Shown piece after piece: positions 21,209-45,823 of a stretch of DNA of 64,000 nucleotides. The translations under genes were made by a program, and so were the position numbers. The DNA is from Macrostomum hystrix. Taxonomy: Eukaryota > Animalia > Platyhelminthes. The notes beneath the pieces were generated by a model. That model did no database searches and had not been told where the DNA came from. It saw nothing but the letters and a program-made list of their open reading frames with translations. The DNA is taken from the NCBI GenBank assembly GCA_950097015.1, contig CATNEN010000007.1, positions 5,890,001-5,954,000 of the forward strand, given 5' to 3'. How positions within the stretch are numbered: position 1 is the first letter of the stretch; each line of letters begins with the position of its first letter.

Positions 21209-21903
21209 AACTGATGCAAAAATCTAAACTGCAAGTCCGGTTTAAATAAAATTAAAACGCATTTTCCCACAGATCACAAAAGCGGAATGCAAAACATTTT
21301 TCCAATATCAATCGAAGCACTAACTTGTATTTTTCCACTAAGTTTACATTGTGTTGACTAGCAATGGAAATTTCCTGGAAATCGCCAGCGAGTTAATGTT
21401 AGCTCCGAGAGTTTTCTCACCCGGTAGCGCTAATGGTGACGACTATGTCAACGAAACGCAGAAAATTGACATTGCATCCGCCTCTTACTAGGCAATTGCT
21501 GCTTAAAATTCCTTTTGCGACAAGTGCCCACGGTGAAATGAGGTCGATCGCGGACCAGGTGCTGAGCAGAAACTTCTGGTCTGGGGTGGCGCTAGCGCCC
21601 TCTCCAGACGAAAGATATCTTTACTGAAGACTCCCTGGGCATGAGCAGCAGCTGCGGAGCCCGTGCAAGGATCGGCGAGAGGAAGAGGAGGGCAGTAGCA
21701 GGAGGGGAGGCAGAGTGGATGATCGCATTATCAAGCCGCAACTGCCCGAATTTTCTGCTGACCAAAAATGCTGAGGCACCACGACGCAAAGTGGACGATT
21801 TTTGCAGATCGATGGCCAGGAAATGCGGATAAATATGACTGGCCTAGACTGGTTCAAAGCCGCGCCCCTCTGACTCGGAGGAGAATCTAGAAAGCAAATC
21901 GAC

Positions 21904-24900
21904 ATGTCACCGACCATGGCTCCGGCCGGTTGGTCTCTGCTCTTAGCTCTCTGGCTGAGCTGCGCTACAGCCGGTGAGTCTCTGTTAGTTGAAGCTTTAG
22001 AGTCCCCCGAGTGACTATTGAAGCATGCTGCGGCAGTGGAGCTCCTATGTCAAGTGTGCAAAATAAGTGGCTTCTGTTTTATTTGATAAATTCGGCAGCC
22101 TTGCACCACATCTAAGGCCAGATCTAAGACACTAAACCATTGTTCAATTGTTTTAAAGTAGAATTAAAATAAACCAGAGGCGGGCAGACTTCGACGTACT
22201 TTTACTCAAACTTTGAATATTGAGGCTGCTTTAAGAATCTCCCAAAATTAGCTCAGGATTTAATTTCAAGCAAGAGACAAACATTTACGTGCTCAAACTG
22301 CTCCTTGTAGCCCACAGCTTTGAGTACAAAGGATGCTTCGCTGACAGCAGGAACCGCGACCTGCCAAAACTGGCTCAATCGTCCACCAGCATGACTGTGG
22401 AGAGGTGCAGCGCACTGTGCAGCGCCTACAGCTACTTCGGTGTGCAGTACTCAAGGGAGTGCTGGTGCGGCAACTCGTTCGGCAAGCACGGCAAGAGGCC
22501 GAACTCCGAGTGCAACATGGCCTGCAGAGGCAACTCCAGGGAGAAGTGTGGCTCCAACTGGAGGAACAATGTCTATGCGACCCGGCGGTCGAGGTCTTGT
22601 GAGTCTATTTTAGTAAATATTCTCGTACATTGTAGTTAATAATGATGCATCGCACGGTTCGAATAGTGCCATGCCGGTCATCGATATAAGAGCTTTATTC
22701 AACTGAATTAATATTGAGCCTAACTTTAAACATGATCGTGACAAACTTTCTCGAATAGTTTTGCGAATTTACTAGAAAAATTGAGAGCGAACCGAAATGC
22801 CCGGGTTTGATGAAGTTTATGCACGAAATATTTACTCTGAGCTCGAAATCTCCAGCCTGTCCCGCAGGTCGGAAGACCCTGGTTGAGTCCCGGCACACCT
22901 GCAGCTGCAAGCCTATCGCCCCTGAGACGCGACTCGGTTCGCTGATTTTCCTCATCGACATCACCGGCAGCATGCGGAGCGTGATCGCGTCCGTCAGGAG
23001 GGACATTCAGAGCATTTTGTCCTCGAACAGGAGATTCAAAAACTACATTATCGCTTCGTTCGGCGATCCCTACAAAAAGAATCTTCGCAAGACAACCAGA
23101 GCGTCGGATGTTCACTCCTTCCTCCGCTCGCTCTCAGTTGGTGGAGGCGGTGACTGTCCTGAGTACTCGCTATCCGCAGCGCTGGATGCGGCCGCGGAGG
23201 CTGACTACAACTCCGTCATGCTGATTTTCACAGACGCTTCTGCGAAGGATAAGAAGACCAAACTAGATAGTGTCAGCGCTGTGGCGAGACGCAAGCGAAT
23301 CAGAGTGTTCACCATAGCCAGCGGCAGCATGTGCGGTGGCGCTCCGGAGTACAGCCAGCTTGCGCAATCGACGGACGGAGGTGTGTCGAACATCCGATCG
23401 TCGTCTTTTGGCCAGGTGCGTTTATTTCTTTCTCAAAGTGCGAGTACTATACATCATTTCTAGTCGCGAAATTGCTGTGCAAATGCAACAGCGATCGCAT
23501 TTGTGTGTTTTAAATGTCAAGAATTTAGTTGTCCAACATTTAAAATTCAAATGAACATGCCTTTGAACTCACCAACAGCTCAAGGAGTTCCTGAAACGAG
23601 CCGTGCGGGGCAGCATGAGTTTCAGTGCTTTGCCAAAAAATTCAGTAGGATACAGAAGCGCGTTGAGAGGATGTGAGTTTGAAAATTATTCCTCCTAAGC
23701 TTCATGCCTAGGTAGAAGTCTACGGACATTTTGACCATAAGGCATATTTAATGAATTTTACAAAAATATCTGACATGATTTCAGCTTGCCGGTGCAGATC
23801 AGTGAAGCTGTATCGCTGCCAGAAGTCAGCAAGAGGTGAGACTGCGGCATTTTCGCGCTTTTGTATGCCAGCAATTAGTTAATTTAGAACCACGAAAGAC
23901 CCAGTTGGTCCAGATGTACAGCCAAGGACACAGCCGCAGGTTTGGCAGGCGTTCAGTCCATGGACTATGGACCGTCGCATCAACCTTAATTTCTACCCGA
24001 GCTTGGTATTTTACGAGTACAGCAGGACTAACTGAAGCAATTGAAAATTAGGTGTCCTCGAGAAAGACCTAAGTTATGCTTTGAATGCAGATTTTAAAGC
24101 CAAATATTTACTAGCTTTGAAGCCAAAATGAGCGTTCAGTCCTTCATTAGTTTAAACTAGGAGTATGGACGCTTGCCTGGTTTTTGCCTGAAAAGTGATG
24201 AGAATGATGTATGCGAGTTTTCTGGTTGGCACTCAATGCCAAAAATCTAAAAATCAGAAAATCAAAGCAGGACAATAAAAGGACAAATAAATATATGTCC
24301 CGTTCCAGTCTGTCCTGCCGGAACAAAGCAAGTTTCAACATCCACGCACACATGCAACTGCAGACCAACGATAGCCGACCTCAGCTTTGGCTCTCTTATT
24401 TTCCTTATCGACACGACCGGCAGCATGGGCAGGGTAATAAAGTCGGTGAAGGACAACATCAATGGCATTCTGTCTGCAAACGTCAGGTTCAGAAACTACG
24501 TAGTCGCCTCGTTTGGAGACCCTTACGTGAAAAACGTGAAGAAAACGAAGAGTGCTGCAGAAATAAAGCGGTTCCTGGAATCGCTTAGGGCTAGAGGCGG
24601 AGGCGACTGTCCGGAGTATTCCATGTCAGGCGCGCTAGACGCAGCAGGTTTGGCCGACGACAACTCTGTCATGCTTTTGTTCACTGATGCTTCAGCGAAG
24701 GATAGGAAAAAGGAAAACCAGGTAGCTAAACTAGCAAAAAGAAAACGGATCCGGGTGTTCGTCATTGCAAGCGGCAGTATGTGCGGAGGCGCGCCAGAGT
24801 ACACACGACTGGCCAAAGCAACCAACGGAGAAGTTTCCAGCATTAGGTCATCCACCTTTTTGCATGTAAGTATTCAAATTGAAAAATAAGAGATTTATGT

Positions 24901-25359
24901 CCACAGCAACCAAAATAAAAAGCAATCATCCGAACCCACAGCTCATGGAATTCCTGAGAAGAGCAGTTCGAGGAAAACTGAGCTTCAGCGCGTTTCCAAA
25001 GACAGCGAGAGGACTACGAGACGCACTCAGAGGAAGTAAGCTAACCTTTTCTATATGCGATGACGATTTGTGACGGAAATACCAACACAACAGACATTAT
25101 AGCTCGTACATACGTTGTACTTAATAATTTTCAGAATGCCGCTGCCGCAAAGAAACACACTACGCCTGTACCAAAAGGAATCCAGGTAATATTAAGAGAA
25201 AACTATCAGTAAGGGAGAGTGGAGAACTAGCAATACAAGTACTAAAAATGAAGAACTAACCAGATTTAGTGATTATTGTGAGCGAACAAAATAAATTGTA
25301 AAGAAGTTTCAGTGGCTTACATTAGGTTTTCTGTTCGATTTAGCCCGAAGAGACACAGC

Positions 25360-25413
<54 letters not shown>

Positions 25414-27085
25414 CGCAGCAGTGATGAATGCTGCCTCAATATCCTCTTGGCACTGAAATTTGACGCAAAAATTCAAATTCTAACTCTGTTTCAGCTGCCG
25501 GAGTTAGTCACGTCGGCTGCTTCAAGGACAATGGAAACCGAGATCTGCCCGTAGTGTACACTGCCGGCTACCAGACATCAAAGGCATTCTGCTTCCGCTA
25601 CTGTCGCAGCCGAGGCTACAGGTACTTTGGCCTGCAGAACGGCAACCAGTGCACTTGTGGAAACACCGTCGGCCGGTACGGCAGAGCAGCGAGCAAGGAT
25701 TGTCGGTCTAAATGCTCGGGTGATAAGAGTACAATGTGCGGCGGCCCATGGAGGAACGATGTATTCACTACTGGACTGAAGCCCAAGAGTGTCAAGAGTA
25801 AGTAATGCCGCTAGTGAGCAGCTAAGAGCTCGAATTTGGTTTAGTGTGAATTTACTAGAGTCTGCTCTCTGCTTTCTGATTGAGCTTCGCTTTCTCAGTG
25901 TTGTCGTGTCTATGAAGACGCGTGTCACAATGCATGTAGGCTATAGCTGTGTGCTCAATAACCTTCCTTGGTCTTGTGAATTTTGCAGCACCGGGTCTGT
26001 CGCACATTGGCTGCTTCATTGATGGCGGAACTCGCGACCTGACGACGCTTGGTGGCAGGGGCAGCATGTCGGTCGGAAAGTGCTACAGACTGTGCAGAAG
26101 CAAGAAGTTCAAGTTCTTTGGAGTCCAGGCTGGAAACGAGTGCTGGTGCGGCAACCACTACGGACGGTATGGCCGACGCGACAAGCGCGAGTGCCGATCG
26201 CAGTGCAACGGAGACAAGACAACCTATTGCGGCGGCGGCTGGAGAAACGACGTGTACGCCACTGGACTGGAGGAGCACGCCGTCGGAGTGAGCTTCCTTG
26301 GCTGCTTCCGCGACAATGGTCATCGCGACTTGCCTGTTGTGCACAATGCCAACCACGAGACCACAAAGGCATACTGTCTGAACTTCTGCAAGGCTCGGGG
26401 CTACAGGTACTTTGGACTGCAGGCTGGATCCCAGTGCACGTGCGGCAACAAGTATGGCAACTTTGGTCGAGTGGCCGTAAAGGAGTGCAGCACACGATGC
26501 CGAGGCGACAACAGACGAACCTGCGGTGGCAGCTGGAGGAACGCAGTCTACTCGACTGGAATCGGCAGCAGGGCTGTTAAACGTGAGCTTTTGTTGCAGC
26601 AGGGTGAAACCAGTAGGGCGTTGCATTTTAGCGTTTAACTACAGAGAACTCCGTTTCTAGGAAGAAGAGTAATGTATAAAACCTCAATCTGACACCGAAT
26701 GACGCTTTTCAGTGGCTGGAGTGAAGCATCTCGGCTGCTATCTGGACAGGGGTGCAAGAGACCTCAGCAGTCGCGTCATCTCCGGATCCGTCACTGTGCC
26801 AAAGTGCTACAATGCGTGCAAGCGCCGCAACTACCGCTTCTTTGGCGTACAGGCAGGCAGCGAGTGCTGGTGCGGAAACCACTACGGCCGATACAGCATC
26901 CGGTCGAACCTCGAGTGCAGGTCACAGTGCAGAGGAGACAAGTCGACCTACTGTGGCGGCGCATGGAGAAACAATGTGTACACCACTGGCGTCGTGGTGG
27001 CCAGCAAAGGTGAGCGGTAGTTGCTGCCAGCTTACATTAGGTTTTCTGTTCGATTTAGCCCGAAGAGACACAGCAGCAGCAGCAG

Positions 27086-27138
<53 letters not shown>

Positions 27139-28809
27139 GCAGCAGTGATGAATGCTGCCTCAATATCCTCTTGGCACTGAAATTTGACGCAAAAATTCAA
27201 ATTCTAACTCTGTTTCAGCTGCCGGAGTTAGTCACGTCGGCTGCTTCAAGGACAATGGAAACCGAGATCTGCCCGTAGTGTACACTGCCGGCTACCAGAC
27301 ATCAAAGGCATTCTGCTTCCGCTACTGTCGCAGCCGAGGCTACAGGTACTTTGGCCTGCAGAACGGCAACCAGTGCACTTGTGGAAACACCGTCGGCCGG
27401 TACGGCAGAGCAGCGAGCAAGGATTGTCGGTCTAAATGCTCGGGTGATAAGAGTACAATGTGCGGCGGCCCATGGAGGAACGATGTATTCACTACTGGAC
27501 TGAAGCCCAAGAGTGTCAAGAGTAAGTAATGCCGCTAGTGAGCAGCTAAGAGCTCGAATTTGGTTTAGTGTGAATTTACTAGAGTCTGCTCTCTGCTTTC
27601 TGATTGAGCTTCGCTTTCTCAGTGTTGTCGTGTCTATGAAGACGCGTGTCACAATGCATGTAGGCTATAGCTGTGTGCTCAATAACCTTCCTTGGTCTTG
27701 TGAATTTTGCAGCACCGGGTCTGTCGCACATTGGCTGCTTCATTGATGGCGGAACTCGCGACCTGACGACGCTTGGTGGCAGGGGCAGCATGTCGGTCGG
27801 AAAGTGCTACAGACTGTGCAGAAGCAAGAAGTTCAAGTTCTTTGGAGTCCAGGCTGGAAACGAGTGCTGGTGCGGCAACCACTACGGACGGTATGGCCGA
27901 CGCGACAAGCGCGAGTGCCGATCGCAGTGCAACGGAGACAAGACAACCTATTGCGGCGGCGGCTGGAGAAACGACGTGTACGCCACTGGACTGGAGGAGC
28001 ACGCCGTCGGAGTGAGCTTCCTTGGCTGCTTCCGCGACAATGGTCATCGCGACTTGCCTGTTGTGCACAATGCCAACCACGAGACCACAAAGGCATACTG
28101 TCTGAACTTCTGCAAGGCTCGGGGCTACAGGTACTTTGGACTGCAGGCTGGATCCCAGTGCACGTGCGGCAACAAGTATGGCAACTTTGGTCGAGTGGCC
28201 GTAAAGGAGTGCAGCACACGATGCCGAGGCGACAACAGACGAACCTGCGGTGGCAGCTGGAGGAACGCAGTCTACTCGACTGGAATCGGCAGCAGGGCTG
28301 TTAAACGTGAGCTTTTGTTGCAGCAGGGTGAAACCAGTAGGGCGTTGCATTTTAGCGTTTAACTACAGAGAACTCCGTTTCTAGGAAGAAGAGTAATGTA
28401 TAAAACCTCAATCTGACACCGAATGACGCTTTTCAGTGGCCGGAGTGAAGCATCTCGGCTGCTATCTGGACAGGGGTGCAAGAGACCTCAGCAGTCGCGT
28501 CATCTCCGGATCCGTCACTGTGCCAAAGTGCTACAATGCGTGCAAGCGCCGCAACTACCGCTTCTTTGGCGTACAGGCAGGCAGCGAGTGCTGGTGCGGA
28601 AACCACTACGGCCGATACAGCATCCGGTCGAACCTCGAGTGCAGGTCACAGTGCAGAGGAGACAAGTCGACCTACTGTGGCGGCGCATGGAGAAACAATG
28701 TGTACACCACTGGCGTCGTGGTGGCCAGCAAAGGTGAGCGGTAGTTGCTGCCAGCTTACATTAGGTTTTCTGTTCGATTTAGCCCGAAGAGACACAGCAG
28801 CAGCAGCAG

Positions 28810-28889
<80 letters not shown>

Positions 28890-30560
28890 GCAGCAGTGAT
28901 GAATGCTGCCTCAATATCCTCTTGGCACTGAAATTTGACGCAAAAATTCAAATTCTAACTCTGTTTCAGCTGCCGGAGTTAGTCACGTCGGCTGCTTCAA
29001 GGACAATGGAAACCGAGATCTGCCCGTAGTGTACACTGCCGGCTACCAGACATCAAAGGCATTCTGCTTCCGCTACTGTCGCAGCCGAGGCTACAGGTAC
29101 TTTGGCCTGCAGAACGGCAACCAGTGCACTTGTGGAAACACCGTCGGCCGGTACGGCAGAGCAGCGAGCAAGGATTGTCGGTCTAAATGCTCGGGTGATA
29201 AGAGTACAATGTGCGGCGGCCCATGGAGGAACGATGTATTCACTACTGGACTGAAGCCCAAGAGTGTCAAGAGTAAGTAATGCCGCTAGTGAGCAGCTAA
29301 GAGCTCGAATTTGGTTTAGTGTGAATTTACTAGAGTCTGCTCTCTGCTTTCTGATTGAGCTTCGCTTTCTCAGTGTTGTTGTGTCTATGAAGACGCGTGT
29401 CACAATGCATGTAGGCTATAGCTGTGTGCTCAATAACCTTCCTTGGTCTTGTGAATTTTGCAGCACCGGGTCTGTCGCACATTGGCTGCTTCATTGATGG
29501 CGGAACTCGCGACCTGACGACGCTTGGTGGCAGGGGCAGCATGTCGGTCGGAAAGTGCTACAGACTGTGCAGAAGCAAGAAGTTCAAGTTCTTTGGAGTC
29601 CAGGCTGGAAACGAGTGCTGGTGCGGCAACCACTACGGACGGTATGGCCGACGCGACAAGCGCGAGTGCCGATCGCAGTGCAACGGAGACAAGACAACCT
29701 ATTGCGGCGGCGGCTGGAGAAACGACGTGTACGCCACTGGACTGGAGGAGCACGCCGTCGGAGTGAGCTTCCTTGGCTGCTTCCGCGACAATGGTCATCG
29801 CGACTTGCCTGTTGTGCACAATGCCAACCACGAGACCACAAAGGCATACTGTCTGAACTTCTGCAAGGCTCGGGGCTACAGGTACTTTGGACTGCAGGCT
29901 GGATCCCAGTGCACGTGCGGCAACAAGTATGGCAACTTTGGTCGAGTGGCCGTAAAGGAGTGCAGCACACGATGCCGAGGCGACAACAGACGAACCTGCG
30001 GTGGCAGCTGGAGGAACGCAGTCTACTCGACTGGAATCGGCAGCAGGGCTGTTAAACGTGAGCTTTTGTTGCAGCAGGGTGAAACCAGTAGGGCGTTGCA
30101 TTTTAGCGTTTAACTACAGAGAACTCCGTTTCTAGGAAGAAGAGTAATGTATAAAACCTCAATCTGACACCGAATGACGCTTTTCAGTGGCCGGAGTGAA
30201 GCATCTCGGCTGCTATCTGGACAGGGGTGCAAGAGACCTCAGCAGTCGCGTCATCTCCGGATCCGTCACTGTGCCAAAGTGCTACAATGCGTGCAAGCGC
30301 CGCAACTACCGCTTCTTTGGCGTACAGGCAGGCAGCGAGTGCTGGTGCGGAAACCACTACGGCCGATACAGCATCCGGTCGAACCTCGAGTGCAGGTCAC
30401 AGTGCAGAGGAGACAAGTCGACCTACTGTGGCGGCGCATGGAGAAACAATGTGTACACCACTGGCGTCGTGGTGGCCAGCAAAGGTGAGCGGTAGTTGCT
30501 GCCAGCTTACATTAGGTTTTCTGTTCGATTTAGCCCGAAGAGACACAGCAGCAGCAGCAG

Positions 30561-30594
<34 letters not shown>

Positions 30595-32266
30595 CGCAGC
30601 AGTGATGAATGCTGCCTCAATATCCTCTTGGCACTGAAATTTGACGCAAAAATTCAAATTCTAACTCTGTTTCAGCTGCCGGAGTTAGTCACGTCGGCTG
30701 CTTCAAGGACAATGGAAACCGAGATCTGCCCGTAGTGTACACTGCCGGCTACCAGACATCAAAGGCATTCTGCTTCCGCTACTGTCGCAGCCGAGGCTAC
30801 AGGTACTTTGGCCTGCAGAACGGCAACCAGTGCACTTGTGGAAACACCGTCGGCCGGTACGGCAGAGCAGCGAGCAAGGATTGTCGGTCTAAATGCTCGG
30901 GTGATAAGAGTACAATGTGCGGCGGCCCATGGAGGAACGATGTGTTCACTACTGGACTGAAGCCCAAGAGTGTCAAGAGTAAGTAATGCCGCTAGTGAGC
31001 AGCTAAGAGCTCGAATTTGGTTTAGTGTGAATTTACTAGAGTCTGCTCTCTGCTTTCTGATTGAGCTTCGCTTTCTCAGTGTTGTTGTGTCTATGAAGAC
31101 GCGTGTCACAATGCATGTAGGCTATAGCTGTGTGCTCAATAACCTTCCTTGGTCTTGTGAATTTTGCAGCACCGGGTCTGTCGCACATTGGCTGCTTCAT
31201 TGATGGCGGAACTCGCGACCTGACGACGCTTGGTGGCAGGGGCAGCATGTCGGTCGGAAAGTGCTACAGACTGTGCAGAAGCAAGAAGTTCAAGTTCTTT
31301 GGAGTCCAGGCTGGAAACGAGTGCTGGTGCGGCAACCACTACGGACGGTATGGCCGACGCGACAAGCGCGAGTGCCGATCGCAGTGCAACGGAGACAAGA
31401 CAACCTATTGCGGCGGCGGCTGGAGAAACGACGTGTACGCCACTGGACTGGAGGAGCACGCCGTCGGAGTGAGCTTCCTTGGCTGCTTCCGCGACAATGG
31501 TCATCGCGACTTGCCTGTTGTGCACAATGCCAACCACGAGACCACAAAGGCATACTGTCTGAACTTCTGCAAGGCTCGGGGCTACAGGTACTTTGGACTG
31601 CAGGCTGGATCCCAGTGCACGTGCGGCAACAAGTATGGCAACTTTGGTCGAGTGGCCGTAAAGGAGTGCAGCACACGATGCCGAGGCGACAACAGACGAA
31701 CCTGCGGTGGCAGCTGGAGGAACGCAGTCTACTCGACTGGAATCGGCAGCAGGGCTGTTAAACGTGAGCTTTTGTTGCAGCAGGGTGAAACCAGTAGGGC
31801 GTTGCATTTTAGCGTTTAACTACAGAGAACTCCGTTTCTAGGAAGAAGAGTAATGTATAAAACCTCAATCTGACACCGAATGACGCTTTTCAGTGGCCGG
31901 AGTGAAGCATCTCGGCTGCTATCTGGACAGGGGTGCAAGAGACCTCAGCAGTCGCGTCATCTCCGGATCCGTCACTGTGCCAAAGTGCTACAATGCGTGC
32001 AAGCGCCGCAACTACCGCTTCTTTGGCGTACAGGCAGGCAGCGAGTGCTGGTGCGGAAACCACTACGGCCGATACAGCATCCGGTCGAACCTCGAGTGCA
32101 GGTCACAGTGCAGAGGAGACAAGTCGACCTACTGTGGCGGCGCATGGAGAAACAATGTGTACACCACTGGCGTCGTGGTGGCCAGCAAAGGTGAGCGGTA
32201 GTTGCTGCCAGCTTACATTAGGTTTTCTGTTCGATTTAGCCCGAAGAGACACAGCAGCAGCAGCAG

Positions 32267-32346
<80 letters not shown>

Positions 32347-34017: not shown

Positions 34018-34051
<34 letters not shown>

Positions 34052-35723
34052 CGCAGCAGTGATGAATGCTGCCTCAATATCCTCTTGGCACTGAAATTTG
34101 ACGCAAAAATTCAAATTCTAACTCTGTTTCAGCTGCCGGAGTTAGTCACGTCGGCTGCTTCAAGGACAATGGAAACCGAGATCTGCCCGTAGTGTACACT
34201 GCCGGCTACCAGACATCAAAGGCATTCTGCTTCCGCTACTGTCGCAGCCGAGGCTACAGGTACTTTGGCCTGCAGAACGGCAACCAGTGCACTTGTGGAA
34301 ACACCGTCGGCCGGTACGGCAGAGCAGCGAGCAAGGATTGTCGGTCTAAATGCTCGGGTGATAAGAGTACAATGTGCGGCGGCCCATGGAGGAACGATGT
34401 ATTCACTACTGGACTGAAGCCCAAGAGTGTCAAGAGTAAGTAATGCCGCTAGTGAGCAGCTAAGAGCTCGAATTTGGTTTAGTGTGAATTTACTAGAGTC
34501 TGCTCTCTGCTTTCTGATTGAGCTTCGCTTTCTCAGTGTTGTCGTGTCTATGAAGACGCGTGTCACAATGCATGTAGGCTATAGCTGTGTGCTCAATAAC
34601 CTTCCTTGGTCTTGTGAATTTTGCAGCACCGGGTCTGTCGCACATTGGCTGCTTCATTGATGGCGGAACTCGCGACCTGACGACGCTTGGTGGCAGGGGC
34701 AGCATGTCGGTCGGAAAGTGCTACAGACTGTGCAGAAGCAAGAAGTTCAAGTTCTTTGGAGTCCAGGCTGGAAACGAGTGCTGGTGCGGCAACCACTACG
34801 GACGGTATGGCCGACGCGACAAGCGCGAGTGCCGATCGCAGTGCAACGGAGACAAGACAACCTATTGCGGCGGCGGCTGGAGAAACGACGTGTACGCCAC
34901 TGGACTGGAGGAGCACGCCGTCGGAGTGAGCTTCCTTGGCTGCTTCCGCGACAATGGTCATCGCGACTTGCCTGTTGTGCACAATGCCAACCACGAGACC
35001 ACAAAGGCATACTGTCTGAACTTCTGCAAGGCTCGGGGCTACAGGTACTTTGGACTGCAGGCTGGATCCCAGTGCACGTGCGGCAACAAGTATGGCAACT
35101 TTGGTCGAGTGGCCGTAAAGGAGTGCAGCACACGATGCCGAGGCGACAACAGACGAACCTGCGGTGGCAGCTGGAGGAACGCAGTCTACTCGACTGGAAT
35201 CGGCAGCAGGGCTGTTAAACGTGAGCTTTTGTTGCAGCAGGGTGAAACCAGTAGGGCGTTGCATTTTAGCGTTTAACTACAGAGAACTCCGTTTCTAGGA
35301 AGAAGAGTAATGTATAAAACCTCAATCTGACACCGAATGACGCTTTTCAGTGGCCGGAGTGAAGCATCTCGGCTGCTATCTGGACAGGGGTGCAAGAGAC
35401 CTCAGCAGTCGCGTCATCTCCGGATCCGTCACTGTGCCAAAGTGCTACAATGCGTGCAAGCGCCGCAACTACCGCTTCTTTGGCGTACAGGCAGGCAGCG
35501 AGTGCTGGTGCGGAAACCACTACGGCCGATACAGCATCCGGTCGAACCTCGAGTGCAGGTCACAGTGCAGAGGAGACAAGTCGACCTACTGTGGCGGCGC
35601 ATGGAGAAACAATGTGTACACCACTGGCGTCGTGGTGGCCAGCAAAGGTGAGCGGTAGTTGCTGCCAGCTTACATTAGGTTTTCTGTTCGATTTAGCCCG
35701 AAGAGACACAGCAGCAGCAGCAG

Positions 35724-35776
<53 letters not shown>

Positions 35777-37447
35777 GCAGCAGTGATGAATGCTGCCTCA
35801 ATATCCTCTTGGCACTGAAATTTGACGCAAAAATTCAAATTCTAACTCTGTTTCAGCTGCCGGAGTTAGTCACGTCGGCTGCTTCAAGGACAATGGAAAC
35901 CGAGATCTGCCCGTAGTGTACACTGCCGGCTACCAGACATCAAAGGCATTCTGCTTCCGCTACTGTCGCAGCCGAGGCTACAGGTACTTTGGCCTGCAGA
36001 ACGGCAACCAGTGCACTTGTGGAAACACCGTCGGCCGGTACGGCAGAGCAGCGAGCAAGGATTGTCGGTCTAAATGCTCGGGTGATAAGAGTACAATGTG
36101 CGGCGGCCCATGGAGGAACGATGTATTCACTACTGGACTGAAGCCCAAGAGTGTCAAGAGTAAGTAATGCCGCTAGTGAGCAGCTAAGAGCTCGAATTTG
36201 GTTTAGTGTGAATTTACTAGAGTCTGCTCTCTGCTTTCTGATTGAGCTTCGCTTTCTCAGTGTTGTTGTGTCTATGAAGACGCGTGTCACAATGCATGTA
36301 GGCTATAGCTGTGTGCTCAATAACCTTCCTTGGTCTTGTGAATTTTGCAGCACCGGGTCTGTCGCACATTGGCTGCTTCATTGATGGCGGAACTCGCGAC
36401 CTGACGACGCTTGGTGGCAGGGGCAGCATGTCGGTCGGAAAGTGCTACAGACTGTGCAGAAGCAAGAAGTTCAAGTTCTTTGGAGTCCAGGCTGGAAACG
36501 AGTGCTGGTGCGGCAACCACTACGGACGGTATGGCCGACGCGACAAGCGCGAGTGCCGATCGCAGTGCAACGGAGACAAGACAACCTATTGCGGCGGCGG
36601 CTGGAGAAACGACGTGTACGCCACTGGACTGGAGGAGCACGCCGTCGGAGTGAGCTTCCTTGGCTGCTTCCGCGACAATGGTCATCGCGACTTGCCTGTT
36701 GTGCACAATGCCAACCACGAGACCACAAAGGCATACTGTCTGAACTTCTGCAAGGCTCGGGGCTACAGGTACTTTGGACTGCAGGCTGGATCCCAGTGCA
36801 CGTGCGGCAACAAGTATGGCAACTTTGGTCGAGTGGCCGTAAAGGAGTGCAGCACACGATGCCGAGGCGACAACAGACGAACCTGCGGTGGCAGCTGGAG
36901 GAACGCAGTCTACTCGACTGGAATCGGCAGCAGGGCTGTTAAACGTGAGCTTTTGTTGCAGCAGGGTGAAACCAGTAGGGCGTTGCATTTTAGCGTTTAA
37001 CTACAGAGAACTCCGTTTCTAGGAAGAAGAGTAATGTATAAAACCTCAATCTGACACCGAATGACGCTTTTCAGTGGCTGGAGTGAAGCATCTCGGCTGC
37101 TATCTGGACAGGGGTGCAAGAGACCTCAGCAGTCGCGTCATCTCCGGATCCGTCACTGTGCCAAAGTGCTACAATGCGTGCAAGCGCCGCAACTACCGCT
37201 TCTTTGGCGTACAGGCAGGCAGCGAGTGCTGGTGCGGAAACCACTACGGCCGATACAGCATCCGGTCGAACCTCGAGTGCAGGTCACAGTGCAGAGGAGA
37301 CAAGTCGACCTACTGTGGCGGCGCATGGAGAAACAATGTGTACACCACTGGCGTCGTGGTGGCCAGCAAAGGTGAGCGGTAGTTGCTGCCAGCTTACATT
37401 AGGTTTTCTGTTCGATTTAGCCCGAAGAGACACAGCAGCAGCAGCAG

Positions 37448-37500
<53 letters not shown>

Positions 37501-39172
37501 GCAGCAGTGATGAATGCTGCCTCAATATCCTCTTGGCACTGAAATTTGACGCAAAAATTCAAATTCTAACTCTGTTTCAGCTGCCGGAGTTAGTCACGTC
37601 GGCTGCTTCAAGGACAATGGAAACCGAGATCTGCCCGTAGTGTACACTGCCGGCTACCAGACATCAAAGGCATTCTGCTTCCGCTACTGTCGCAGCCGAG
37701 GCTACAGGTACTTTGGCCTGCAGAACGGCAACCAGTGCACTTGTGGAAACACCGTCGGCCGGTACGGCAGAGCAGCGAGCAAGGATTGTCGGTCTAAATG
37801 CTCGGGTGATAAGAGTACAATGTGCGGCGGCCCATGGAGGAACGATGTATTCACTACTGGACTGAAGCCCAAGAGTGTCAAGAGTAAGTAATGCCGCTAG
37901 TGAGCAGCTAAGAGCTCGAATTTGGTTTAGTGTGAATTTACTAGAGTCTGCTCTCTGCTTTCTGATTGAGCTTCGCTTTCTCAGTGTTGTTGTGTCTATG
38001 AAGACGCGTGTCACAATGCATGTAGGCTATAGCTGTGTGCTCAATAACCTTCCTTGGTCTTGTGAATTTTGCAGCACCGGGTCTGTCGCACATTGGCTGC
38101 TTCATTGATGGCGGAACTCGCGACCTGACGACGCTTGGTGGCAGGGGCAGCATGTCGGTCGGAAAGTGCTACAGACTGTGCAGAAGCAAGAAGTTCAAGT
38201 TCTTTGGAGTCCAGGCTGGAAACGAGTGCTGGTGCGGCAACCACTACGGACGGTATGGCCGACGCGACAAGCGCGAGTGCCGATCGCAGTGCAACGGAGA
38301 CAAGACAACCTATTGCGGCGGCGGCTGGAGAAACGACGTGTACGCCACTGGACTGGAGGAGCACGCCGTCGGAGTGAGCTTCCTTGGCTGCTTCCGCGAC
38401 AATGGTCATCGCGACTTGCCTGTTGTGCACAATGCCAACCACGAGACCACAAAGGCATACTGTCTGAACTTCTGCAAGGCTCGGGGCTACAGGTACTTTG
38501 GACTGCAGGCTGGATCCCAGTGCACGTGCGGCAACAAGTATGGCAACTTTGGTCGAGTGGCCGTAAAGGAGTGCAGCACACGATGCCGAGGCGACAACAG
38601 ACGAACCTGCGGTGGCAGCTGGAGGAACGCAGTCTACTTGACTGGAATCGGCAGCAGGGCTGTTAAACGTGAGCTTTTGTTGCAGCAGGGTGAAACCAGT
38701 AGCGCGTTGCATTTTTAGCGTTTAACTACAGAGAACTCCGTTTCTAGGAAGAAGAGTAATGTATAAAACCTCAATCTGACACCGAATGACGCTTTTCAGT
38801 GGCTGGAGTGAAGCATCTCGGCTGCTATCTGGACAGGGGTGCAAGAGACCTCAGCAGTCGCGTCATCTCCGGATCCGTCACTGTGCCAAAGTGCTACAAT
38901 GCGTGCAAGCGCCGCAACTACCGCTTCTTTGGCGTACAGGCAGGCAGCGAGTGCTGGTGCGGAAACCACTACGGCCGATACAGCATCCGGTCGAACCTCG
39001 AGTGCAGGTCACAGTGCAGAGGAGACAAGTCGACCTACTGTGGCGGCGCATGGAGAAACAATGTGTACACCACTGGCGTCGTGGTGGCCAGCAAAGGTGA
39101 GCGGTAGTTGCTGCCAGCTTACATTAGGTTTTCTGTTCGATTTAGCCCGAAGAGACACAGCAGCAGCAGCAG

Positions 39173-39225
<53 letters not shown>

Positions 39226-40896
39226 GCAGCAGTGATGAATGCTGCCTCAATATCCTCTTGGCACTGAAATTTGACGCAAAAATTCAAATTCTAACTCTGT
39301 TTCAGCTGCCGGAGTTAGTCACGTCGGCTGCTTCAAGGACAATGGAAACCGAGATCTGCCCGTAGTGTACACTGCCGGCTACCAGACATCAAAGGCATTC
39401 TGCTTCCGCTACTGTCGCAGCCGAGGCTACAGGTACTTTGGCCTGCAGAACGGCAACCAGTGCACTTGTGGAAACACCGTCGGCCGGTACGGCAGAGCAG
39501 CGAGCAAGGATTGTCGGTCTAAATGCTCGGGTGATAAGAGTACAATGTGCGGCGGCCCATGGAGGAACGATGTATTCACTACTGGACTGAAGCCCAAGAG
39601 TGTCAAGAGTAAGTAATGCCGCTAGTGAGCAGCTAAGAGCTCGAATTTGGTTTAGTGTGAATTTACTAGAGTCTGCTCTCTGCTTTCTGATTGAGCTTCG
39701 CTTTCTCAGTGTTGTTGTGTCTATGAAGACGCGTGTCACAATGCATGTAGGCTATAGCTGTGTGCTCAATAACCTTCCTTGGTCTTGTGAATTTTGCAGC
39801 ACCGGGTCTGTCGCACATTGGCTGCTTCATTGATGGCGGAACTCGCGACCTGACGACGCTTGGTGGCAGGGGCAGCATGTCGGTCGGAAAGTGCTACAGA
39901 CTGTGCAGAAGCAAGAAGTTCAAGTTCTTTGGAGTCCAGGCTGGAAACGAGTGCTGGTGCGGCAACCACTACGGACGGTATGGCCGACGCGACAAGCGCG
40001 AGTGCCGATCGCAGTGCAACGGAGACAAGACAACCTATTGCGGCGGCGGCTGGAGAAACGACGTGTACGCCACTGGACTGGAGGAGCACGCCGTCGGAGT
40101 GAGCTTCCTTGGCTGCTTCCGCGACAATGGTCATCGCGACTTGCCTGTTGTGCACAATGCCAACCACGAGACCACAAAGGCATACTGTCTGAACTTCTGC
40201 AAGGCTCGGGGCTACAGGTACTTTGGACTGCAGGCTGGATCCCAGTGCACGTGCGGCAACAAGTATGGCAACTTTGGTCGAGTGGCCGTAAAGGAGTGCA
40301 GCACACGATGCCGAGGCGACAACAGACGAACCTGCGGTGGCAGCTGGAGGAACGCAGTCTACTCGACTGGAATCGGCAGCAGGGCTGTTAAACGTGAGCT
40401 TTTGTTGCAGCAGGGTGAAACCAGTAGGGCGTTGCATTTTAGCGTTTAACTACAGAGAACTCCGTTTCTAGGAAGAAGAGTAATGTATAAAACCTCAATC
40501 TGACACCGAATGACGCTTTTCAGTGGCCGGAGTGAAGCATCTCGGCTGCTATCTGGACAGGGGTGCAAGAGACCTCAGCAGTCGCGTCATCTCCGGATCC
40601 GTCACTGTGCCAAAGTGCTACAATGCGTGCAAGCGCCGCAACTACCGCTTCTTTGGCGTACAGGCAGGCAGCGAGTGCTGGTGCGGAAACCACTACGGCC
40701 GATACAGCATCCGGTCGAACCTCGAGTGCAGGTCACAGTGCAGAGGAGACAAGTCGACCTACTGTGGCGGCGCATGGAGAAACAATGTGTACACCACTGG
40801 CGTCGTGGTGGCCAGCAAAGGTGAGCGGTAGTTGCTGCCAGCTTACATTAGGTTTTCTGTTCGATTTAGCCCGAAGAGACACAGCAGCAGCAGCAG

Positions 40897-40949
<53 letters not shown>

Positions 40950-42620
40950 GCAGCAGTGATGAATGCTGCCTCAATATCCTCTTGGCACTGAAATTTGACG
41001 CAAAAATTCAAATTCTAACTCTGTTTCAGCTGCCGGAGTTAGTCACGTCGGCTGCTTCAAGGACAATGGAAACCGAGATCTGCCCGTAGTGTACACTGCC
41101 GGCTACCAGACATCAAAGGCATTCTGCTTCCGCTACTGTCGCAGCCGAGGCTACAGGTACTTTGGCCTGCAGAACGGCAACCAGTGCACTTGTGGAAACA
41201 CCGTCGGCCGGTACGGCAGAGCAGCGAGCAAGGATTGTCGGTCTAAATGCTCGGGTGATAAGAGTACAATGTGCGGCGGCCCATGGAGGAACGATGTATT
41301 CACTACTGGACTGAAGCCCAAGAGTGTCAAGAGTAAGTAATGCCGCTAGTGAGCAGCTAAGAGCTCGAATTTGGTTTAGTGTGAATTTACTAGAGTCTGC
41401 TCTCTGCTTTCTGATTGAGCTTCGCTTTCTCAGTGTTGTTGTGTCTATGAAGACGCGTGTCACAATGCATGTAGGCTATAGCTGTGTGCTCAATAACCTT
41501 CCTTGGTCTTGTGAATTTTGCAGCACCGGGTCTGTCGCACATTGGCTGCTTCATTGATGGCGGAACTCGCGACCTGACGACGCTTGGTGGCAGGGGCAGC
41601 ATGTCGGTCGGAAAGTGCTACAGACTGTGCAGAAGCAAGAAGTTCAAGTTCTTTGGAGTCCAGGCTGGAAACGAGTGCTGGTGCGGCAACCACTACGGAC
41701 GGTATGGCCGACGCGACAAGCGCGAGTGCCGATCGCAGTGCAACGGAGACAAGACAACCTATTGCGGCGGCGGCTGGAGAAACGACGTGTACGCCACTGG
41801 ACTGGAGGAGCACGCCGTCGGAGTGAGCTTCCTTGGCTGCTTCCGCGACAATGGTCATCGCGACTTGCCTGTTGTGCACAATGCCAACCACGAGACCACA
41901 AAGGCATACTGTCTGAACTTCTGCAAGGCTCGGGGCTACAGGTACTTTGGACTGCAGGCTGGATCCCAGTGCACGTGCGGCAACAAGTATGGCAACTTTG
42001 GTCGAGTGGCCGTAAAGGAGTGCAGCACACGATGCCGAGGCGACAACAGACGAACCTGCGGTGGCAGCTGGAGGAACGCAGTCTACTCGACTGGAATCGG
42101 CAGCAGGGCTGTTAAACGTGAGCTTTTGTTGCAGCAGGGTGAAACCAGTAGGGCGTTGCATTTTAGCGTTTAACTACAGAGAACTCCGTTTCTAGGAAGA
42201 AGAGTAATGTATAAAACCTCAATCTGACACCGAATGACGCTTTTCAGTGGCTGGAGTGAAGCATCTCGGCTGCTATCTGGACAGGGGTGCAAGAGACCTC
42301 AGCAGTCGCGTCATCTCCGGATCCGTCACTGTGCCAAAGTGCTACAATGCGTGCAAGCGCCGCAACTACCGCTTCTTTGGCGTACAGGCAGGCAGCGAGT
42401 GCTGGTGCGGAAACCACTACGGCCGATACAGCATCCGGTCGAACCTCGAGTGCAGGTCACAGTGCAGAGGAGACAAGTCGACCTACTGTGGCGGCGCATG
42501 GAGAAACAATGTGTACACCACTGGCGTCGTGGTGGCCAGCAAAGGTGAGCGGTAGTTGCTGCCAGCTTACATTAGGTTTTCTGTTCGATTTAGCCCGAAG
42601 AGACACAGCAGCAGCAGCAG

Positions 42621-42673
<53 letters not shown>

Positions 42674-45560
42674 GCAGCAGTGATGAATGCTGCCTCAATA
42701 TCCTCTTGGCACTGAAATTTGACGCAAAAATTCAAATTCTAACTCTGTTTCAGCTGCCGGAGTTAGTCACGTCGGCTGCTTCAAGGACAATGGAAACCGA
42801 GATCTGCCCGTAGTGTACACTGCCGGCTACCAGACATCAAAGGCATTCTGCTTCCGCTACTGTCGCAGCCGAGGCTACAGGTACTTTGGCCTGCAGAACG
42901 GCAACCAGTGCACTTGTGGAAACACCGTCGGCCGGTACGGCAGAGCAGCGAGCAAGGATTGTCGGTCTAAATGCTCGGGTGATAAGAGTACAATGTGCGG
43001 CGGCCCATGGAGGAACGATGTATTCACTACTGGACTGAAGCCCAAGAGTGTCAAGAGTAAGTAATGCCGCTAGTGAGCAGCTAAGAGCTCGAATTTGGTT
43101 TAGTGTGAATTTACTAGAGTCTGCTCTCTGCTTTCTGATTGAGCTTCGCTTTCTCAGTGTTGTTGTGTCTATGAAGACGCGTGTCACAATGCATGTAGGC
43201 TATAGCTGTGTGCTCAATAACCTTCCTTGGTCTTGTGAATTTTGCAGCACCGGGTCTGTCGCACATTGGCTGCTTCATTGATGGCGGAACTCGCGACCTG
43301 ACGACGCTTGGTGGCAGGGGCAGCATGTCGGTCGGAAAGTGCTACAGACTGTGCAGAAGCAAGAAGTTCAAGTTCTTTGGAGTCCAGGCTGGAAACGAGT
43401 GCTGGTGCGGCAACCACTACGGACGGTATGGCCGACGCGACAAGCGCGAGTGCCGATCGCAGTGCAACGGAGACAAGACAACCTATTGCGGCGGCGGCTG
43501 GAGAAACGACGTGTACGCCACTGGACTGGAGGAGCACGCCGTCGGAGTGAGCTTCCTTGGCTGCTTCCGCGACAATGGTCATCGCGACTTGCCTGTTGTG
43601 CACAATGCCAACCACGAGACCACAAAGGCATACTGTCTGAACTTCTGCAAGGCTCGGGGCTACAGGTACTTTGGACTGCAGGCTGGATCCCAGTGCACGT
43701 GCGGCAACAAGTATGGCAACTTTGGTCGAGTGGCCGTAAAGGAGTGCAGCACACGATGCCGAGGCGACAACAGACGAACCTGCGGTGGCAGCTGGAGGAA
43801 CGCAGTCTACTCGACTGGAATCGGCAGCAGGGCTGTTAAACGTGAGCTTTTGTTGCAGCAGGGTGAAACCAGTAGCGCGTTGCATTTTTAGCGTTTAACT
43901 ACAGAGAACTCCGTTTCTAGGAAGAAGAGTAATGTATAAAACCTCAATCTGACACCGAATGACGCTTTTCAGTGGCTGGAGTGAAGCATCTCGGCTGCTT
44001 TCTGGACAAGGCTGCGAGGGATCTGAGGAAGCGTGTTTTTTCTGGATCTATTACTACCCGAAAGTGCTACAACATGTGCAAGGTCCGAAAATATCGTTAC
44101 TTTGGGGTGCAGAATGGAAAGGAGTGCTGGTGCAGCAATCATTATGGCCGATACGGCATCCGATCGGGCCTAGAGTGCCGGACGCAGTGCAGCGGAGACA
44201 AGTCGAGCGATTGCGGGGGTCCGTGGAGGAACAGTATTTTCTCTACGGGCTACAACCCAGATGGTGAGAACTCATTTTAATGGTTGCGTCTATTTTGAGG
44301 CCGGAAATAATAAATTATTTTTTTGTTTCAGTTCCTATTTGTCCGTTTGGAACTGTGGCAAAAACTATTAAACGAAGAGCTTGTGGTTGCGCTCCGACAC
44401 CTGGACCGGAGATTCTCGGCTCTCTAGCTTTTGTTGTTGATACTACTGGTAGCATGGGATCCGTGTTCAAGTCAGTTCGGAACAGCATTTCTAAGATCCT
44501 ATCTGCAAACAGGCGATTCCAGAACTTTGTGGTTGCAAGCTACGGTGATCCGTACAAGCGCCATGTGACTCGATCGTCATCAGCTTCGAGTGTTCAGAGT
44601 TTCCTAGATAAAATTCGGATTGGCGGTGGTGGCGACTGTCCTGAGTTTGCTATTTCTGCTGTGATTGACGCAGCCGAAAAAGCTGATGAGGACTCGGTGC
44701 TGCTTCTGTTCACAGATGCCTCGGCGAAGGACCGCAGCTTGACCCCACGTGCAGCGACCTTGTTGAAGTCGAAGAGAATCCGCTTCATCGCCATTGGCAG
44801 CGGCCATTTGTGCGGTGGTGGCGCTGAATACGATCAGCTGGCCAGAGAGACCGGGGGACTCGTTGCGAAGTTGAGTCGCAGTGTTTCAGATAAGGTTAGT
44901 TATCAATGCCGCCGCAAAACAGTATCTGGGCAAAAAAAATATTTGCAAGTTATACTGGTTTTTTCTTTGTGACTTTAGGTCATGAAACTTATTGAACTGG
45001 CAGCTGGAGGCAAAATGAGTTTCCGAGCATTCCCGAAGACCACTAGCGATCTTGACAATGCATTGAGAGGAAGTGAGTTATTAATGTAATTTTTGCTTCA
45101 GAAAATAGATGTTCTTATTTAGTAGTTTGCTTAAATTTGTAATAACATTTCTAGAATGTCCCTGTCGAACGGTAAAGCGTCGTGTCTGCGTGAAGCCCCA
45201 TTCGGGTATGTTTGCTCGTAGTTTTGATTTTTCGATTCCATTTTTGCGATTGGTTGGCAGATGCACATTTCTTATTCGCTTTTAGCTACCTTGGGCTGCT
45301 TCCTGGACGATCCAGACCACCCGGACTTCTCGGTGGTGGCCGGTAGGGGCGAGAAGATGACGATCTGGAAGTGCAACGATCTCTGCAAGGCCAAGAAGTT
45401 TTCCTACTTCGGTCTGAAGAACGGCTCTCAGTGCAGCTGCGGCGACAACTACGGAAACAGTGGTGACGTGGACAAATCCAAGTGCAGCATGCCCTGCTCT
45501 GGCAATCGGGTGGAGAAGTGCGGCGGTCGCACAAGCAATAGTGTGTACAAGGTGGACTAA
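21904..45560 (+). CDS. Giant secreted WSC-repeat / hemicentin-type vWA protein (~5,290 aa; 46 WSC + 3 vWA modules)
   Basis: Signal-peptide exon 21904-21973 (MSPTMAPAGWSLLLALWLSCATA). WSC exon 22311-22598. vWA-1 exons 22856-23415, 23579-23672, 23785-23835. vWA-2 exons 24309-24865, 24942-25035, 25135-25185. Then 11 x [303-, 594-, 297-nt exons = 4 WSC], first unit 25495-25797, 25989-26582, 26713-27009, last exon 43973-44263. vWA-3 exons 44332-44894, 44979-45072, 45155-45205. Final WSC 45286-45560 (TAA). All junctions are GT-AG and phase-compatible; total 15,876 nt. WSC motif GCF.D...RDL..C...C...Y.YFG.Q.G.EC.CGN..C...C.G.....CGG.WRN.VY. vWA motifs D[TI]TGSM, GGGDCPE, FTDASAKD. Confidence 0.88.
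25316..43998 (+). repeat. Intragenic tandem array of ~1.72-kb units (3 exons + 3 introns), 11 copies, near-identical
   Basis: Unit spacings from the ORF track: 1724, 1751, 1706, 1751, 1706, 1724, 1724, 1725, 1724, 1724. Length differences come from an intronic (CAG/TAG)n tract and a 1-nt T indel. Confidence 0.97.
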
Positions 45561-45670: not shown

Positions 45671-45676
45671 AATAAA
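45671..45676 (+). terminator. Probable polyadenylation signal of the WSC/vWA gene
   Basis: AATAAA ~110 nt after the stop codon, followed by T-rich sequence. Confidence 0.5.
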
Positions 45677-45823
45677 AATATAATTTTCTATTTAAAAGGG
45701 ATATAATTAGTTTCTATTTACCTATAGATTGTTTTCATGTTTTTTTCATTAAAAAAGCAAGATAATATTTTGTTTTAAGAGTCTAGGTCGCTGAATATAG
45801 GTTAGTTTACTGAATTCCAAGTC

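Follow-up and report, generated by a model that had tools for sequence, protein, structure and literature searches.

Within a 64,000-nucleotide stretch of the Macrostomum hystrix genome (contig CATNEN010000007.1, here C7, positions 5,890,001-5,954,000; hereafter, the window), we found a single spliced and expressed gene of a Macrostomum-type flatworm, located on the + strand at 21904-45560. It encodes a very large protein composed of 46 WSC and three vWA domains, arranged in the order signal peptide-WSC-vWA-vWA-(WSC)44-vWA-WSC, and its coding exons add up to 15,873 nucleotides (nt), i.e., 5,291 codons and amino acids (aa) before the stop codon. We read the product as one giant, secreted, polycationic WSC/vWA glycan binder, most plausibly a component of the prostate or seminal secretion. 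Taken as a whole, we consider the chances of this reading to be about even, its structural part being right and its functional part plausible.

The gene was delimited from its reading frame, its splice sites, and its domains. In the list of open reading frames (ORFs) covering 21-46.5 kb, the same set of short ORFs returned every ~1.72 kb between 25.3 and 44 kb, and the G+C content rose from ~0.47 in the flanks to ~0.54 in this array. When the phase was tracked exon by exon through the 5' part, the repeat, and the 3' part, the frame was unbroken, and the ATG at 21904 was preceded by an in-frame stop just upstream. The 5' side contained eight exons, whose boundaries were refined with RNA joints; the array contained 32 exons (11 copies of B, 11 of C/D, and 10 of A), all open in frame; and the 3' side contained five exons, which were read from the sequence (Table 1). 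In the three vWA modules, the layout was the same, with a vWA exon of 557-563 nt followed by one exon of 94 nt and another of 51 nt. A six-frame scan of the whole window, performed with hidden Markov models (HMMs) built from the gene's own domains, detected exactly 46 WSC and three vWA domains, all on the + strand and inside 22313-45557. The domain, charge, and homology searches reported below were run on separate exons, and the whole-chain figures are sums over exons. A preliminary description of this DNA had already proposed one spliced gene with this domain order, and its coordinates, domain count, and unit size all matched the exon phasing and the HMM scan.

Table 1. Features of the gene and of its tandem array, with positions in the window. 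The last column gives the comparison with the Macrostomum lignano protein models P0164 and P0162.
Feature	Position	Strand	Evidence	M. lignano P0164/P0162
Exon 1: short 5' leader, ATG at 21904, signal peptide MSPTMAPAGWSLLLALWLSCATA, phase-1 donor	21874..21973	+	RNA contigs begin at 21874 and splice 21973>22311 (GT..AG); hydrophobic core, then A-T-A	
Exon 2: WSC domain 1, net charge +9, 8 Cys	22311..22598	+	Pfam WSC, 74 bits; RNA-spliced on both sides	
vWA module 1: 22856-23415 (Cys-knot lead-in and VWA_4), 23579-23672 (94 nt), 23785-23835 (51 nt, CRCR...C)	22856..23835	+	VWA_4, 108 bits; all junctions GT..AG in RNA; frame	
vWA module 2: 24309-24865, 24942-25035 (94 nt), 25135-25185 (51 nt)	24309..25185	+	VWA_4, 123 bits; RNA junctions, including 25185>25495; AlphaFold2 vWA fold	
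Tandem array, 11 units of ~1,724 bp (spacings 1706-1751), from the CAG-bearing intron before the first B exon to ~28 nt into A'	25348..44000	+	Repeat finder; unit alignment	
Unit exon B (one WSC in 303 nt, phase 1 at both ends); 11 copies, this being the first and 42754-43056 the last	25495..25797	+	RNA; frame; Pfam WSC	
Unit exon C/D (two WSC in 594 nt, phase 1 at both ends); 11 copies, this being the first and 43248-43841 the last	25989..26582	+	RNA; frame; Pfam WSC in two stretches, 128 bits	
Unit exon A (one WSC in 297 nt, phase 1 at both ends); 10 copies, this being the first and 42248-42544 the last	26713..27009	+	Sequence; RNA A>B joint	
Intronic (CAG)n tract in the A-B intron, one per unit, 19-34 repeats	27071..27145	+	Between donor 27010 and acceptor 27218; skipped by RNA contigs	
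Terminal divergent exon A' (WSC 45), tail ...TGYNPD, 68% aa identity to A	43973..44263	+	Sequence; RNA loose end; M. lignano tail TGYNP	72% identity
vWA module 3 (predicted): 44332-44894, 44979-45072 (94 nt), 45155-45205 (51 nt)	44332..45205	+	VWA_4, 101 bits; predicted GT/AG sites and phases; exon sizes as in modules 1 and 2; M. lignano collinearity	vWA exon, 76% identity; 94-nt exon peptide, 84% identity; CPCR...C peptide present
Last exon: WSC 46, near neutral (+2), TAA at 45558-45560	45286..45560	+	Pfam WSC, 70 bits; identity to the C-terminal WSC of P0164/P0162	78% identity; same end ...VYKVD
AATAAA, likely polyadenylation signal	45671..45676	+	Sequence	

Expression was supported by public sequencing data. 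Part of 21800-27100 was contained in 15 public runs; one of them, DNA-like and probably the source of the assembly, contained 98% of the words sampled. Seven further runs of this organism, coming from two studies, contained 40-49%, the exonic share of the stretch being about half as estimated from the exon coordinates. The RNA contigs were compared over 21600-27060 in runs X2, X5, and X4 of the source organism and in one run (X9) of a related organism, here organism B. A contig of 1,823 nt in X2 (1,804 nt in X4) joined exon 1 to the first repeat exon across eight GT..AG introns, and this was observed in three runs from the two studies. The segments of the X2 contig were 21874-21972, 22310-22598, 22856-23412, 23576-23672, 23785-23833, 24307-24865, 24942-25035, and 25135-25182, followed by 31 nt from 25493. 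Additional joints linked B to C/D (25797>25989) and C/D to A (26582>26713), while a joint running back from 27007 to 25493 corresponded to the cyclic splice from exon A of one unit to exon B of the next (A>B), mapped back onto the only unit compared. In X4, a contig with a loose end at 26755 continued into sequence that is unique in the window, at 44016-44045 inside A', indicating that the terminal divergent exon is transcribed. No pile-up of contig ends was found inside 21600-27060 in the four runs. Two introns had been singled out in the preliminary description: that between 25185 and 25495 was found as claimed and confirmed by the spliced RNA contigs, and that between 44263 and 44332 was predicted at the same coordinates from GT/AG sites and phase, with the M. 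lignano orthologue collinear through it. Separately, ~40 nt of the WSC1 exon (22432-22474) was shared by RNA contigs of other genes, which then ran into unrelated sequence, and the depth there was 3-4 times that of the neighbouring exons; a core segment nearly identical to this one is present in other expressed WSC genes.

In the InterPro/HMMER-type check suggested beforehand, both domain families were recognised above the Pfam gathering scores. Every exon offered in the right frame matched WSC (PF01822) with 55.9-128 bits (gathering score 27.8), and eight conserved Cys were present in every WSC type (WSC1, A, A', B, C, D, and WSC46). The only solved relatives detectable by sequence were the WSC domains of Kremen1 (5FWS, E 1e-12) and of the fungal Wsc1 type (7PZ2, E 9e-6). 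The three vWA exons matched VWA_4 (PF25106) with 107.8, 122.6, and 101.1 bits (gathering score 27), along with weaker matches to VWA, VWA_2, and VWA_3. When 12 vWA exons of the genome were aligned, the motifs DxTGS, GGGDCPE, and FTDASAKD were invariant, as were the three Cys of the CPxG...CxC lead-in; the invariant positions D34, T36, G37, S38, G96-E102, and F124-D131 make up the putative metal-site motif set. The vWA domains are, hence, of the VWA7/hemicentin type that had been anticipated from the same motifs. The AlphaFold2 model of vWA2 had a predicted local distance difference test (pLDDT) score of 80.7 and a predicted template-modelling (pTM) score of 0.76, with the alternating strands and helices of a vWA fold, and Foldseek matched it to the integrin beta8 I-like domain, ITIH1, TFIIH p44, and the CMG2 (anthrax-receptor) vWA domain, with E from 2e-8 to 1e-6. 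A search of the vWA exon sequence against the PDB gave no match up to E = 1, and in the ESM Atlas vWA2 matched only generic VWA clusters, with scores <0.9. A search for homologous proteins with the vWA3 exon gave no match within its length filter. In integrin beta I-like domains, a loop of the D-x-P-E-G-G type contributes to the metal sites, and the invariant GGGDCPE loop may reasonably be taken to point to a cation site of the integrin-beta type.

The N-terminus, MSPTMAPAGWSLLLALWLSCATA followed by AH..., reads as a putative classical signal peptide. Outside it, no 19-residue window reached a Kyte-Doolittle mean of 1.6, and the chain ended three residues past the cysteine-rich core of the last WSC; therefore, the protein has no transmembrane segment or glycosylphosphatidylinositol (GPI)-type tail, in agreement with the secretory signal and the lack of such a tail proposed earlier. 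The net charge was +7 to +12 for the array WSC domains (pI 9.2-9.7), +9 to +12 for the vWA exons, +2 to +6 for the short linker exons, and +2 for the last WSC. The earlier statement that the repeated WSC domains are strongly Arg/Lys-rich was supported, only the last WSC being near neutral. Summed over copies, the 5,250 residues counted carried a net charge of ~+523 and 393 Cys, and a single NxS/T sequon was found among the distinct exon peptides. The WSC domains of this gene are unusually cationic: across the 175 WSC-rich proteins found, the median of the mean charge per WSC was -0.8, with values of +2.2 for the amphioxus giant and -4.6 for Diplonema, and the WSC domains of the M. lignano orthologue reached +14 to +16.

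The central part of the gene is a tandem array in which whole exon-intron units are repeated almost without change. The repeat finder gave 11 copies with 99-100% identity and start-to-start spacings of 1724, 1751, 1706, 1751, 1706, 1724, 1724, 1725, 1724, and 1724 bp. In an example unit read base by base, the exons A (26713-27009), B (27219-27521), and C/D (27713-28306) were flanked by canonical GT/AG sites. One unit codes 1,194 nt (297 + 303 + 594), i.e., four WSC domains in 398 aa, exactly the unit length given in the preliminary description. An exon-by-exon search showed that the copies had zero to one mismatches each and identical splice sites, and that only one distinct peptide was encoded by A, one by B, and two by C/D. 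The only tandem-repeat rows inside the array were one (CAG)19-34 tract per unit, and the differences in unit length arise because the length of this tract varies. Besides CAG length, the ten complete units differed at six positions in ~1.72 kb (three exonic, one of them peptide-changing), a count that leaves out the last unit from ~28 nt into A', where that unit diverges. The introns were as alike between units as the exons. The single-nucleotide polymorphisms (SNPs) and CAG lengths were ordered along the array, the long units being 2 and 4 and the short ones 3 and 5, and a C/T site reading CCTTCCTTTTT. Such an order is expected if blocks of two units were duplicated, and it argues that the long-read assembly resolved the units. 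As all unit exons are phase 1-1, the gain, loss, or skipping of any of them keeps the reading frame.

The closest public proteins were models of M. lignano, with ~80% identity. Two of them, P0164 (PAA, BOX15_Mlig000253g1, 821 aa) and P0162 (A0A1I8JDU5, 1,174 aa), ran gap-free through A', vWA3, and the last WSC; this collinearity indicates the same order and junction set at the 3' end as predicted here. These models share with our gene the B-C-D-A unit, the terminal A', the VWA_4 module, the peptides of the 94- and 51-nt exons, and the last WSC, with 72-84% identity exon by exon (Table 1), but they are fragmentary, lack the 5' part, had their units homogenised separately, and are uncharacterised.

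Comparison of the two species showed how the array evolves. The M. lignano models, which derive from a fragmented assembly, carry the same B-C-D-A unit, and in P0159 and P0161 each unit is identical to the next, at offset 450. Between species, identity by domain type was 82% for A-A, 80% for B-B, 80% for C-C, 78% for D-D, and 79% for the last WSC, while the four domain types within one unit shared only 43-58%. Since types pair between species and units are uniform within each, the four-domain unit and the array predate the species split, with each lineage homogenising its own copies. The A' exon keeps the orthologous TGYNP tail in both species; however, its identity to A is 68% here and 93% in M. 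lignano, so that the edge of the homogenised zone differs between them. On this sequence comparison, the array is a textbook case of concerted evolution, its copies being kept uniform through unequal crossing-over or gene conversion. In addition, each 450-aa unit of P0159, P0161, and P0162 contains, after the A-type tail VVVASK, a stretch of 52 aa that partially duplicates the second half of WSC C and is absent from the last unit of P0162; this may be either an extra M. lignano exon or a gene-model artefact.

The gene has relatives elsewhere in its own genome. A search of the 220 Mb in 42 contigs with one unit and the vWA2 exon revealed a 55-kb cluster on another contig, C1 (8447770-8502463), with WSC exons showing 65-78% DNA identity to the unit and vWA exons showing 55-60% protein identity. 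Scanning of C1:8,444,001-8,510,000 showed two minus-strand genes, with the orders WSC2-V-W-V-W2-V-(W)~26-V-W and W4-V-(W)14-V-W (V, vWA; W, WSC), both ending with the same short terminal WSC type, and four near-neutral WSC exons on the + strand between them, at 8472187-8474509. A partial M. lignano protein of 4,054 aa, PAA60592.1 (P0251), reads W-V-W6-W24-V-W. The two C1 paralogues and PAA60592.1 follow the same vWA-(WSC)n-vWA-terminal WSC grammar as our gene, but their 14-26 WSC repeats are old, diverged (65-78% nt identity to the unit), and not homogenised, and in the C1 paralogue P1 the WSC charge is lower (+3 to +8). The full set of this order plus the 94- and 51-nt linker exons was found here, in the two C1 paralogues, and in M. 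lignano P0251, P0160, P0162, P0163, and P0164; some M. lignano relatives (P0014 and P0160) add F5/8-type-C modules.

The vWA subtype itself is expanded, with at least 30 VWA_4 exons elsewhere in the genome. Clusters of these exons were noted at C24:6560751-6565405 (four near-identical, in tandem), C39:4689575-4701226, C11:3451803-3453837, C1:9986552-9995710 and 10596639-10598183, and C37:3373543-3375741, and the M. lignano protein P0177 (1,272 aa) has four such vWA domains plus LCCL. When the vWA module was searched against proteins of 451-1,437 aa, PF25106 and WSC occurred together only in Macrostomum; the next vWA relatives in that set, with 30-38% identity, were VWA7-like proteins of bacteria and fungi, an insect protein rich in Ig domains, and uromodulin-like proteins of amphibians.

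Long WSC arrays are known from very large, uncharacterised proteins of other phyla, including Styela clava XP_077968393.1 (5,975 aa, ~55 WSC), a Branchiostoma hybrid XP_078580859.1 (5,602 aa, 38 WSC), and a Diplonema protein (23 WSC). The preliminary description had taken WSC domains to occur usually in few copies, a generalisation that these diplonemid, amphioxus, and Styela proteins qualify, WSC domains not always being few. Unlike our gene, the three giants contained no vWA detectable with the HMM from its vWA exons, which covers that vWA type only, and they showed 32-35% identity; moreover, the Branchiostoma and Diplonema WSC domains are near neutral or acidic. The oyster 'fungistatic metabolite' proteins also have long WSC arrays without this vWA. 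VWA7 and hemicentin share the vWA subtype and motif set (PF25106), but with 30-38% identity, and the Pfam scans of the exons, which gave only WSC and VWA families, detected none of their companion domains (PF25107, PF23560, and PF23619 for VWA7; an Ig array, EGF, and the fibulin module for hemicentin); such companions appeared only in the distant matches. Kremen1 (5FWS) and fungal Wsc1 (7PZ2) are membrane receptors with a single WSC, accompanied by kringle and CUB domains in the former and by a Ser/Thr-rich stalk and a transmembrane segment in the latter. Our protein does not belong with the fungal Wsc sensors, in which such a stalk, a transmembrane helix, and a cytoplasmic tail come after the WSC, as no 19-residue window outside the signal peptide was hydrophobic enough and the chain ends at the last WSC. 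No characterised protein with the same architecture was found, and the literature on WSC together with flatworm, adhesive, or von Willebrand describes none. The suggestion that the architecture lies outside any named family was, therefore, upheld insofar as there is no characterised match, but it is not unique, given the two C1 paralogues and the uncharacterised public M. lignano orthologues and paralogues. Collectively, this is a lineage-specific, uncharacterised variant of known domains, in a world where giant poly-WSC proteins occur in other phyla.

Two described adhesive proteins of the genus were also considered. Mlig-ap1 (5,407 aa) is a giant, Cys-rich, K/R-rich cohesive adhesive protein whose cationic repeats interact with negatively charged sugars, and Mlig-ap2 contains vWD, TIL, LDLR, TSP1, and repeats of 221/255 aa (PMC6410801). 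As a giant, secreted, repetitive protein rich in Cys and K/R, Mlig-ap1 may be a functional analogue of our protein, but it is not homologous, having unstructured KR repeats, C-type lectin, vWD/C8/TIL, and EGF in place of WSC and vWA. Identity of the gene with Mlig-ap1 or Mlig-ap2 was rejected because the domain content described for them (PMC6410801) is absent from the exon Pfam scans, the distinction being made against the published description.

Outside the gene, a 26-bp tandem repeat (8 copies, 96% match) lies at 21002-21209, ~700 bp upstream of exon 1 and within a 225-aa minus-strand ORF (20593-21270). An (AGTC)14 microsatellite is placed at 45820-45875, ~260 bp past the stop codon and beyond the AATAAA motif. 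Strong GC-skew blocks were found at 1-2000 (+0.28), 10001-12000 (+0.29), 18001-20000 (+0.36), and 54001-56000 (-0.43).

As for function, the product would be a beads-on-a-string, disulfide-stabilised, multivalent lectin-like polymer. The many weak sites of its 46 lectin-type domains may together give high-avidity binding and, along with a charge of ~+520, could bind and cross-link polyanionic glycans, i.e., those of mucus and glycocalyx, or sulfated or acidic polysaccharides. The three vWA modules, of which two precede the array and one follows it, lie near the two ends and could act as cation-dependent points of protein attachment or self-assembly. The source would be a secretory gland, and the male prostate, which would place the protein in seminal fluid, is the leading candidate because WSC proteins are the commonest annotated class among M. 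lignano prostate-limited transcripts. For about two dozen of these 76 transcripts, the best hit was of the WSC type ('WSC domain-containing', 'fungistatic metabolite', 'transmembrane receptor', etc.), and one prostate-limited transcript of 5.2 kb, RNA815_324.1, has an amphioxus match with E 1e-122 over 659 aa (PMC5977470, Table S1), as a poly-WSC transcript would give. RNA815_80.4 encodes two WSC domains, and its knock-down abolishes the prostate-gland antibody signal (PMC4490696); Mlig-pro46 and several other seminal-fluid candidates resemble WSCD2 (PMC6953679). The only published tissue localisations of Macrostomum WSC proteins are in the prostate (PMC4490696, PMC6953679, PMC5977470). Like our protein, these prostate-limited candidates (RNA815_80.4, Mlig-pro46, and others) are secreted WSC-domain proteins of the same genus, but they are mostly ~1-kb transcripts with about two WSC and no vWA reported. 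We ranked a prostate or seminal secretion first, as the most plausible source, and other gland secretions second.

Several points weigh against this reading. The 3' junctions are predicted from GT/AG sites, phase, and the collinear M. lignano orthologue, and the RNA evidence consists of assembled contigs too short to span the array, which leaves the continuity of the 11 units in one mRNA presumptive. The depth of the repeat contig was ~21-22 times that of the unique 5' contig in the three runs of the source organism, not the 11 times of the assembled units, and ~3 times in organism B, which makes the unit number uncertain; 5' under-coverage of a 16-kb mRNA, variation in unit number, collapse of the array, or internal starts could each account for the excess. 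Glycan binding by WSC and metal binding by vWA are assumed from what is known of the families, and in Kremen, the WSC domain contributes to the binding of a protein. None of the peptides deduced from the Mlig-pro46 primers occurred in the 240 proteins retrieved, M. lignano orthologues included, and by this attempt the gene could be linked to no transcript tested in situ. Lastly, the prostate WSC transcripts described are mostly ~1 kb, not giants, and the best-BLAST-hit table of prostate transcripts names no von Willebrand or vWA protein (PMC5977470). Apart from this, the repeat exons of organism B differed from the window at only two positions, and the gap in depth (~3 vs. ~21-22) could mean that close relatives differ in the number of units.

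The same protein might belong instead to a non-reproductive secretion, serving as a polycationic cohesive or cross-linking component of epidermal mucus, the rhabdite matrix, or an adhesive-organ or cement/shell-gland product, which we regard as possible but doubtful. The giant, repetitive make-up rich in Cys and K/R parallels that of Mlig-ap1 with its cationic repeats (PMC6410801), WSC genes are numerous in the genome and need not all be prostatic, and the RNA from the runs of two studies carries no tissue information. However, the two adhesive proteins of the Macrostomum adhesion literature contain vWD, C-type lectin, EGF, and TSP1, with neither WSC nor vWA (PMC6410801), our literature search gave no paper pairing flatworm adhesion with WSC, and every published tissue assignment of a Macrostomum WSC protein is to the prostate.

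It is improbable that the giant size is partly a product of the assembly, or that the locus gives several shorter products through another unit number, internal starts, or exon skipping. Units that are 99.7-100% identical over 19 kb are hard to assemble, short-read contigs cannot span them, the depth ratio exceeds 11 units in the source organism and is far lower in organism B, and skipping of phase 1-1 exons stays in frame. Nevertheless, the units are individually marked by SNPs and ordered CAG lengths, as in a resolved long-read assembly; RNA contigs run from the unique 5' part into the array and from the array into A'; the M. lignano models also contain several successive units; and contig ends did not accumulate inside 21600-27060. 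An innate-immune agglutinin, i.e., a secreted multivalent pattern-recognition lectin netting microbes by binding their polysaccharides (e.g., beta-glucans), is likewise a slim prospect: binding of beta-1,3-glucan has been reported for fungal WSC lectins, high valency together with positive charge fits anionic microbial surfaces, and the family members P0014 and P0160 carry galactose-binding-like F5/8-type-C lectin modules, but a runaway expansion of homogenised units is no less typical of structural or reproductive secretions.

Returning to the polycationic glycan binder of the prostate or seminal secretion, a more specific proposal, which we consider rather unlikely, is that the WSC array would be the bulk cross-linking polymer of a Macrostomum secretion (ejaculate or seminal fluid), with the WSC domain retuned from neutral-glucan to polyanionic-glycan binding. 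The in-frame cassette would then allow fast changes in unit number among individuals and among species (11 assembled; depth ~21 vs. ~3 in organism B), and valency could be a fast-evolving trait, e.g., under sexual conflict.

Macrostomum serves as a model in research on sexual selection, bioadhesion, and regeneration, and WSC proteins dominate the annotated part of the prostate-limited transcripts of M. lignano. For the largest member of a lineage-specific WSC/vWA family, of which the public annotation has fragments only, the locus offers a complete model, RNA-supported in its 5' part, and a clear case of concerted evolution acting on a whole exon-intron cassette. The biochemistry of WSC domains rests on a few fungal and vertebrate examples, and the defined 398-aa unit is an expressible, testable piece; if it is true that a polycationic WSC array binds anionic glycans, this would widen the ligand range of the domain. 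The interest of the gene, hence, lies mainly in the reproductive and secretion biology of Macrostomum and in the concerted evolution of exon cassettes.

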